Below the pieces are notes generated by a model, which made no database searches, was not told the origin of the DNA, and saw only the letters and a program-made list of their open reading frames with translations. The position numbers and the translations under genes are program-made. This document shows positions 38,701-41,700 of a stretch of DNA of 64,000 nt, one piece after another; position 1 is the first letter of the stretch, and each line of letters starts with the position of its first letter. Source of the stretch: Podarcis melisellensis. Its lineage: Eukaryota. The stretch lies in assembly GCA_964234715.1 (NCBI GenBank), contig OZ174275.1; one strand, written 5' to 3'.

Positions 38701-41700
38701 AACATGCTATGTGAAAGGTATTCATCGGCTTCATGAAAATCTGCTCTCTTAAATCTATGGGGAGAGGTGTTAGTCCACCTTTCACAAAAATGGAGCATAG
38801 AGTTCCAAGGCTTTCTCTGTGGTAGTAGCTACACTCTGGGGTGTATTTTGATCAGAAGCTCACCTAGCCACTTCTCTCATTGTTTGGTGGCTGGTTAAAA
38901 TCTGACTCTTTAAGAGAGCTTTTTAGTCACAGGTTTCTTGAATTGATATTATGCTAATATATTTAGGACCAGATTTTCAAAAATACATTTGTGAGGTTTT
39001 TATTGATTTTTAAGAAGTATTTTTATATCATCATTTTTATCATGATTTATGAAGTACAGTACACCACTTTGAATTTAGTTTTGGCAACACAGAAGAGGCG
39101 TACAAATGTGATATACAAACCAAAAAATACATTTATATGATTCAACACCTGTTCAGGAACACACACACACACACACAAACAGTTCTAGGAAGTGGCAGCA
39201 AATGGGAACAGATTCCTGTACCAACTCTCATTCATTATAATACGCCTCAATGTACTTAGTAGTGCGTTTGCACAACACTGAAATGGTTCATAACTTTTAA
39301 GAACTGGATCTTATTAGCATATTATAATGCAAATTATGGTGATTTCTCTGATGGAAAAATCACACAGCCTCACAAGATATGCAAATGTTGTAGGCTTAAG
39401 TTATCTGCTACATACATAGAAGATTAGGATGCAAAAGTGGGGAGGCGAAAACATTGACAGGATTGACAGGACTAACACTGTACCTGTCTCTGTGCCTGGT
39501 AAACGGCAAGTGTTGAACAAACGTTCATACTGAGAAGAGCACATTGGGATGGCATTGTAAATCATAAGCTGAAAGGAAAAAAGGAAAGTCAAAGAACCCA
39601 TACCGGGTAGCAAATCATTTCCCGGGAGCACCTTTATTTTTATTTTTTAAAAGAGAAAGAACAGGGACAGCACATAATCATACAAGGTGAACCGGTGAGC
39701 AAGGTATTTGAAATGTGGATCAGGATTTTATCAACGGCTGCCACATATTTCAAGTGTACAAGTCACTCCATTCTCCTTGGGCTGCACACACTGCAAATAT
39801 GAATGTTTGTTATTAGAATGGTATACTCAAGAAGAAATTCTGGAAGTATTTCAATTCTTTGATGTTCCTTTTCTTCAGCTGATTCAGCTTACCTGTTTCC
39901 TCTCCAGGAATACGGGATGTATTAAACATCCTCTCCCATTGTGCTGAGCAGAGTGGAACAGTGGATCCCATCAGAAGAATCTATGCCGCAAACGAGTGTT
40001 ATGATTGCGTTTCACAAATGGAGTTAAGCACGTGAAGAAAAAAACACGTGTGAATCAGAAGGAATGCCAGAAGATTTGCGGATCCTTGGGGCCACTTCAT
40101 ATCTCATTTCCACAAGAGGAAATTGTGGCTCACCAACCTTCATCAATTAATATGCATATTCCACAGCATGTAAAGGTAAAGCGACCCCTGACCGTTAGGT
40201 CCAGTCATGGACGACTCTGGGATTGCAGCACTCATCTCGCTTTACTGGCTGAGAGAGCCGGCATACAGCTTCCGGGTCATGTGGCCAGCATGACTAAGCC
40301 GCTTCTGGCGAACCAGAGCAGCACACGGAAACGCCGTTTACCTTCCCACCGGAGTGGTACCTATTTATCTACTTGCACTCTGACGTGCTTTCGAACTGCT
40401 AGGTTGGCAGTACATGGCATGTACACACATGCAATTTCCCTGCAGGAGGCTTTATGCTTGTGCATTTTCAGTATGCCAGCTTCCAAAATCCCTTTTTTTA
40501 ATTATTTTCTCCCTAGACCTCTCTCTCGTCTGCCAATGGTAGAGTCTGCAGAAGTTCTTCCAATTGCTCTTAAGCTGCCATATACATTCCAAAATTTATC
40601 CCTTTTCTGCACCCTTCAACATTATGCTGCATTGTGTTCTTATCAATCAAAATGAGGGCTGCCACTAAGATTTTTTGTAATCCTTTAAATGTCATCATTT
40701 CCAAAATCTGCGATCATTTTCAAATCTCTTTTAATAAACTTTATCTGTATCCGTAATACAGTAAAGATTCACTTTCCTGGCCCCAGGTACCACTAAAAGT
40801 TGCCACTAAAATGCCTCCTACAAAGAAATATAGAAATCACATACTAAAACAGGACAGGAAAAGTAGCTTTCCTTATATAGACTGTTCATGGAAACTTGAA
40901 AGGTAGTCTACTTTTCAAGTGGTCCTGCTCCATGCACAGGACAGAATTCTCCATACCTGCTGTGCGAACAGGGGGAGGGTGCCCTATGGCTTGCAATGAA
41001 TAGGAGTATTGAATGAACATATTAGAACCCCTCCAAAGTTCTGGAGCCATGTCCCCATGAGGCCCAGATGGGAATTCTATTGATATCAGCTAGGCAGCAT
41101 TAGAAGCCGTGTTGAGTCCAAAGAAGAGTGGGACCCTAGCCAAGGGATCCCCACTGGCTTGCCCTTTAAACCAATTTTTATTTGCATCAATTTGTTCCCC
41201 AGCAATTCAACAACCTCATGGTTTCACTTGCTTGCTATGGGATGCACATTTAACTGTGGTGGACAAATCATGTCTTACATTTGAAAGTAGGAGGCTTCAT
41301 TCCTCCTCTGAGTTACTTTTAAGCAAGTAATGAGGCTTTTCTTATATCCATCAGACCCAAACGTGTGACTATTATTATTTTTTAAATGTACATACTGGCT
41401 GGATTTGTTGTCTGTCCAGTTTTCTTCTGTATAGCAGTATGGAATGGATAGCATTGCCAGCTCTAGCTGCCTGTATACTGGTAGGAGTAAAATAGAGGAA
41501 ATCCTAAAGGATAAAGAGAATGGACAGGGATGAATGTTAGCAGAGCCGTATGTGCTCAAGAACACAAATGTTATCACAAATGCACACAACCCACCTGCTC
41601 ACTGTTGAAAGGAAAGCTTCGCATGTATTTATTTTCATTTATATATAGTTCACACAACACAACAGCACCAGCTGCACACAAGCTTCTACTTTGTTAGGCC

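Follow-up and report, generated by a model that had tools for sequence, protein, structure and literature searches.

The CPT1A gene of the lizard Podarcis melisellensis carries two homologous copies of exon 9, 9a and 9b, and the question that it raises is whether both are used, one per transcript, and whether the choice between them gives two different forms of the enzyme. CPT1 is the enzyme at which the pace of long-chain fatty-acid oxidation is set, and what makes CPT1A and CPT1B differ kinetically has been mapped only in part; a natural swap of 28 residues within a single gene allows the contribution of this segment to be tested cleanly. The window, the whole stretch of 64,000 nucleotides that was analysed (contig OZ174275.1 of assembly GCA_964234715.1), holds the gene and both copies (Table 1). 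The encoded protein is identical to isoform X1 of Podarcis raffonei at 768 of 770 positions and to isoform X1 of P. muralis at 766 of 770, and in the protein tree the gene clusters with CPT1A, apart from CPT1B and CPT1C. Retrieved gene models named TESMIN are neighbours of CPT1A.

Table 1. Features of the CPT1A locus, in window coordinates
Feature	Position	Strand	Description	Evidence
CPT1A coding span	23645..52433	(-)	18 coding exons plus 9b	
Exon 8	41396..41503	(-)	108 nt, constitutive, upstream partner	sequence and RNA joints
Exon 9a	39893..39980	(-)	88 nt, residues 294-322 of the 770-aa isoform, derived copy (extra codon Trp308)	RNA joints 39980/41396, 36472/39893
9a-9b intron	39569..39892	(-)	324 nt	sequence
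Exon 9b	39484..39568	(-)	85 nt, 769-aa isoform, ancestral length, PMCS..QY type	RNA joints 39568/41396, 36472/39484
Exon 10	36277..36472	(-)	196 nt, constitutive, downstream partner	sequence and RNA joints
Predicted 9a branch point	40023..40027	(-)	about -47/-48; conserved in lizard, turtle and alligator	motif match only
Predicted 9b branch point	39588..39592	(-)	-24; same place in lizard, turtle and alligator	motif match only
Candidate hairpin GACAGG/CCTGTC	39465..39488	(-)	over the 9b donor	predicted in three species, z -1.4 to -3.0, no covariation

Both copies have AG/GT ends and run from phase 0 to phase 1. Aligned from the 3' end they are identical at 15 of 28 residues, with different codons at 10 of those 15, and at 49 of 85 nucleotides. 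Each copy finds the other by tblastn (E 4e-10 and 1e-9, the next-best match in the window being at 0.2-0.4), the exon-9 profile scores 70-80 against a shuffled maximum of -22, and neither the tblastn search nor the profile scan found a third copy in the window. Followed from exon 8, the reading frame is kept with either copy alone, runs into a stop inside 9b when both are included and into a stop five codons into exon 10 when both are skipped. The initial annotation of this locus had given the same coordinates, lengths, phases, intron and peptides and the same stops, all of which were reproduced on recheck, the stops with exon 8 placed as in Table 1; its count of 14 identical residues in a 21-residue core, 10 of them recoded, is consistent with the figures above. 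All sampled words of the stretch are present in three DNA runs. The intron between the copies measures 419 nt in the alligator and 488 nt in the turtle. A high-copy short repeat, probably a SINE, lies 200 nt upstream of 9a at 40186-40420, with a read depth thousands of times the background and with copies at 4187-4411 and 14077-14301 that are 88-89% identical.

The RNA evidence comes from four runs, unlabelled as to tissue, of a close relative, not of the window's own species, mapped to 36150-41700. Run X23 consists of raw reads, with a threshold of 3 reads; runs X2, X4 and X6 are contig runs, in which rare forms drop out, and were taken as RNA by a guess that the spliced joints within them support. 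The joint between exons 8 and 9b is covered by 18 reads in X23, and those of 8-9a, 9a-10 and 9b-10 by 8 reads each; every joint has canonical ends and the strand is the expected one. In runs X2 and X4 the only joints are those of 9b (depth 81-213), the 9a region being at intron level (14-18), and both forms occur in run X6, with 9a somewhat the higher (9a 138-218, 9b 100-152). Exon 9b is used by spliced reads or contigs in all four runs, often as the sole form, and given that its share ranges from nearly all to about half, the choice differs between samples. At this low depth, and with the 3-read threshold for raw reads, no 9a-9b or 8-10 joint is listed across the four runs. In summary, 9a and 9b are confirmed as mutually exclusive homologous exons by their homology, their shared phases, their near-equal length, their conservation and the joining of both to both flanks. 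The earlier prediction of one-of-two splicing is thereby borne out, with its four expected joints present and the two unproductive ones missing, as is the idea of variable isoform use, the 9a/9b ratio being sample-dependent; the check proposed for spliced reads using 9b found them in every run. The read counts are small, and the missing 9a-9b joints could stem from decay instead of exclusion during splicing: double or empty products would shift the frame and be removed by nonsense-mediated decay, which can explain why single-exon forms alone are seen.

The pair had been presented as a feature of a lizard gene, a framing that does not stand: the pair is a feature of jawed vertebrates, common to CPT1C and already contained in automatic gene models, and the search for 9b across squamates, turtles, crocodilians, amphibians and fish found it intact. 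Among typed CPT1A models, the b-type form (that of 9b) accounts for 29 of 63 in squamates, 5 of 14 in crocodilians, 10 of 22 in turtles and 13 of 28 in amphibians, and it also occurs in coelacanth, bichir, paddlefish, bowfin, teleosts and skate. Length is not diagnostic by itself, a 28-residue a-type exon being found in pig, beaver and some rodents. The b-type form is usually annotated as isoform X2, which has one residue fewer than X1, and the lizard 9b peptide is identical to that of isoform X2 in P. muralis, P. raffonei and Zootoca. In fish, both copies stand in several gene models and reading frames of genomic DNA, a before b. Both types are present in CPT1C of frog, lacertids, gecko and teleosts, and CPT1B has one b-type exon (sturgeon). 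In lizard CPT1C, where a- and b-type isoforms are annotated, the a-type exon is fast-evolving. The b-type exon of teleost CPT1C is strongly diverged, with a PCCS motif and a long branch in the exon tree, which suggests a changed function in that lineage.

The X1/X2 isoforms of CPT1A and CPT1C in RefSeq, for non-avian, non-mammalian vertebrates, are thus the same pair, although there they stand as predicted models without description. No paper describing the vertebrate pair was found in the literature outside subscription journals. A treatment of vertebrate and fish CPT1 evolution makes no mention of exons or splicing (PMC4589379), a second report gives 18 exons and no such splicing (PMC7088126), and the four CPT I alpha1a cDNAs of a goby study, as cited in PMC5713373, may include 9a/9b variants. 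The pair is real, RNA-supported and ancient, and, as far as was searched, machine-annotated yet undescribed; within the same bounds, what is new here is the origin common to CPT1C, the standing of 9b as the ancestral form and its loss in birds and in mammals in parallel. Work on CPT1A and CPT1C of fish, amphibians and reptiles has probably pooled two enzymes.

How old the pair is, and which copy is the older form, can be approached from the trees and from the outgroups. In a protein tree built without exon 9, CPT1A and CPT1C are sisters (98/95) with CPT1B separate, and X1/X2 pairs are identical outside exon 9. In the tree of exon 9 itself (29 columns), the a-type exons of CPT1A group with those of CPT1C in a single clade (99/96) and topologies that force a duplication in each gene are rejected (p-AU 0.043 and 0.018); from the gap-free 22-column core alone the a-type clade is not recovered (2 changes). 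Given that the pair is also found in CPT1C, the duplication is probably older than the split of CPT1A and CPT1C. Amphioxus, the lamprey gene and sturgeon CPT1B have one exon each here, 85 nt long and identically bounded, and in invertebrate proteins the segment is 28 residues long and carries Tyr at position 308. This length and Tyr308 in the outgroups identify 9b as the conservative copy and 9a as the derived one. The earlier description of 9b as one codon shorter is correct as to the lengths, 85 against 88 nt, but not as a shortening, since the length of 9b is ancestral and 9a has the extra codon. On this sequence evidence the simplest history is probably a tandem duplication before the CPT1A/CPT1C split, in which an ancestral single 85-nt exon would have been duplicated in early jawed vertebrates; the single exon of CPT1B may reflect a loss of 9a, or CPT1B may have branched off before the duplication. 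The introns of the lamprey gene hold partial duplicates of exons 10-12 (locus positions 8291-8338, 9402-9479 and 10425-10511). A sea cucumber model with triple exon-9 motifs was set aside as a probably faulty model, given that its isoform X2 has one.

A whole-gene profile scan identified 9a and an intact 9b in the alligator and the green turtle, and only 9a in tinamou, canary, platypus, wombat and bat, where the next-best scores lie within the shuffled background and the introns checked contain no N. No b-type model occurs among 101 bird models, many of them homology-projected, or among 83 mammal models, and no 9b remnant was found at the DNA level in canary, bat, wombat or platypus. In the tinamou, about 130 nt of the intron align with that of the alligator up to the 9b branch motif, which is still recognisable, and beyond it the tract, the acceptor and the exon are not. 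This abrupt end of the alignment points to loss rather than missing data and, 9b being retained in crocodilians and turtles, the disappearances from birds and from mammals were independent events. Each loss, judged from the five genomes scanned, predates the deepest living split of its group; by this account birds and mammals would each have dropped 9b and fixed 9a. Both losses fall in endotherm lineages, and two events are insufficient to establish a cause; the parallel loss, with crocodilians retaining 9b, is nevertheless a testable candidate for convergence with endothermy.

Exon 9 encodes part of the catalytic domain. C304, T314 and R316, which are sites of patient mutations in CPT1A deficiency (PMC10076611), fall within exon 9, and all three are present in both copies, as had been claimed. 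The likeness of 9b to CPT1B in PMCS, and to CPT1C in QY, also proved right, the QY being that of b-type CPT1C; in length, too, 9b agrees with CPT1B. The part of CPT2 that we take to match the exon-9 segment is rich in patient mutations as well (Tyr210, Asp213, Met214, Gln216, Pro227). The two types differ at Leu/Met303, Trp/Tyr308, Glu versus Ile/Val320 and in the first seven or eight residues, and these differences persist across the range from skate to crocodile, in CPT1A and in CPT1C alike. No structure of a CPT1 catalytic domain was found in PDB searches, the fold search matched only CrAT, CrOT, ChAT and CPT2, and the AlphaFold model, with pLDDT below 50 at 287-328, is uninformative on the contacts of exon 9. 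The swap would alter about 13 residues and one codon in a segment of the catalytic domain needed for activity, and the outcome would be two active CPT1A enzymes, one ancestral and CPT1B-like (9b) and one derived (9a). That both forms are active and truly differ in kinetics, regulation or stability we judge to have a probability of roughly three in four. The core residues are largely common, and the two forms might be kinetically alike.

At the RNA level, the lizard shares the synonymous codon at 20 of 20 sites of 9b with the turtle and likewise with the alligator, compared with 62-65% in the constitutive exons (p 2e-4 to 4e-4), a degree of conservation that is a signature of splicing signals inside the exon. 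Together with the intact copies across groups, it agrees with the initial view of an old duplication under purifying selection. The 9a acceptor is pyrimidine-poor (10-11 of 20) and its donor consensus, and the 9b acceptor is strong (18 of 20 pyrimidines) and its donor weak and non-consensus (GTACAG), with a conserved stretch behind it that is predicted to fold back over the donor. The choice may come from competing weak sites, 9a with a poor acceptor and good donor and 9b with a good acceptor and weak donor, the latter perhaps within a hairpin, and tissue-dependent splicing factors would read these sites; no RBFOX, QKI or MBNL motif was found around the exon pair. The position of the predicted 9b branch motif so close to its own exon, some 300 nt from the 9a donor, does not indicate steric exclusion, and a search for pairings of the docking/selector type gave only 6-bp position-conserved pairings with no covariation.

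What the two enzymes are for is a more tentative matter. It is possible, and no firmer than a proposal that is doubtful in its full form, that 9a/9b is a fuel- or temperature-dependent switch of ectothermic vertebrates on the rate-limiting step of fatty-acid oxidation, that the independent losses in birds and mammals, each fixing 9a, were convergent toward endothermy, and that the swap accounts for some of what sets liver-type CPT1A apart from muscle-type CPT1B. An overlapping explanation, likewise tentative and rather unlikely as it stands, is that the forms differ in thermal stability or cold activity and not in ligand affinity, the switch tracking body temperature or season. The retention of 9b in all sampled ectotherm groups and its loss in both endotherm lineages would fit such a role, as would the lowered stability of C304W, a substitution within the segment (PMC10076611), and the marginal stability of the candidate hairpin that covers the 9b donor. 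However, the pattern comprises only two loss events, and the hairpin is without covariation support.

The splicing might be real and the proteins near-equivalent, the pair being kept for expression control, such as by a fraction of unproductive splicing, or for overlapping conserved splice signals. The constraint on 9b is indeed visible in the RNA, in its extreme synonymous conservation, more than half of the residues are common to the two exons and two lineages have lost 9b while retaining the gene. However, this is distinctly unlikely for two reasons: first, the type-specific residues that have stayed distinct from skate to crocodile in two genes point to selection on a protein difference; second, none of the four runs contains an unproductive joint. 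Two enzymes with different kinetic or regulatory properties are the preferred reading.

A comparable switch exists in the fly, where the 6A and 6B exons of Drosophila CPT1 (whd) alter activity and are used differently in flight muscle than in fat body, with a shift under starvation (PMC10879661, PMC7767417). As here, mutually exclusive exons lie in the catalytic domain of a CPT1 enzyme, and with the starvation-responsive change of activity in the fly (PMC10879661) this raises the possibility that both pairs descend from a bilaterian ancestor. Such descent is very unlikely: the segment is present as a single copy in amphioxus, the lamprey gene and sturgeon CPT1B, and the butterfly Bicyclus has it once, with no intron at its 3' boundary, and has a separate 63-nt (21-codon) exon right after the catalytic His. 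The fly 6A and 6B exons encode 21 residues, a length that this butterfly exon fits. Judged from the butterfly locus, the fly pair most likely covers another segment, not the same one as the initial annotation had wondered, and is likely of independent origin; kinetics were measured in the fly, whereas the evidence here is of sequence and RNA. No second copy of the 63-nt exon was found in that repeat-ridden locus, where exon ends are tandemly repeated many times (11859-13378, 15655-16714 and 19870-20268); the Bicyclus protein model contains duplicated stretches, from an assembly artefact or a local repeat expansion. The weakest alternative, under which 9b would be decaying, unused or an artefact of assembly, is refuted by its spliced use in all four runs, and its intact state across jawed vertebrates and the three DNA runs speak against it as well.

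Two further exon switches invite comparison with the 9a/9b pair. PKM exons 9 and 10 are another metabolic exon switch. In OGDH, a mitochondrial enzyme likewise tuned by one of two homologous exons, 4a and 4b exclude one another through a distant branch point near the upstream donor and the system is linked to endothermy (PMC7969005), whereas the 9b branch motif lies at -24 in its intron. The pair belongs to a familiar class of element, further examples of which exist in this genome. The homologous exclusive exons surveyed by Abascal et al. (2015; PMC4494069), where isoforms separated after gene duplication, resemble the present pair in being tandem, used one per transcript and of jawed-vertebrate age, and perhaps in a retention that differs among paralogs (CPT1B has a single b-type exon, CPT1A and CPT1C have both); they differ in that the loss in CPT1 was lineage-wise and parallel. 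CPT1 is absent from that survey, as expected given that it began from human pairs and that mammalian CPT1A is without 9b.

Skates, and cartilaginous fish in general, are reported to be without CPT1B (PMC4589379). Their CPT1A transcripts are mostly b-type (about 83 contigs against 2) and their a-type exon is unusually diverged; a b-type, CPT1B-like CPT1A in skate bears on the idea that the loss of CPT1B explains skate metabolism. Several lizards have short CPT1A or CPT1C models of 335-336 aa that stop just past exon 9, possibly through read-through of intron 9 or an alternative last exon.
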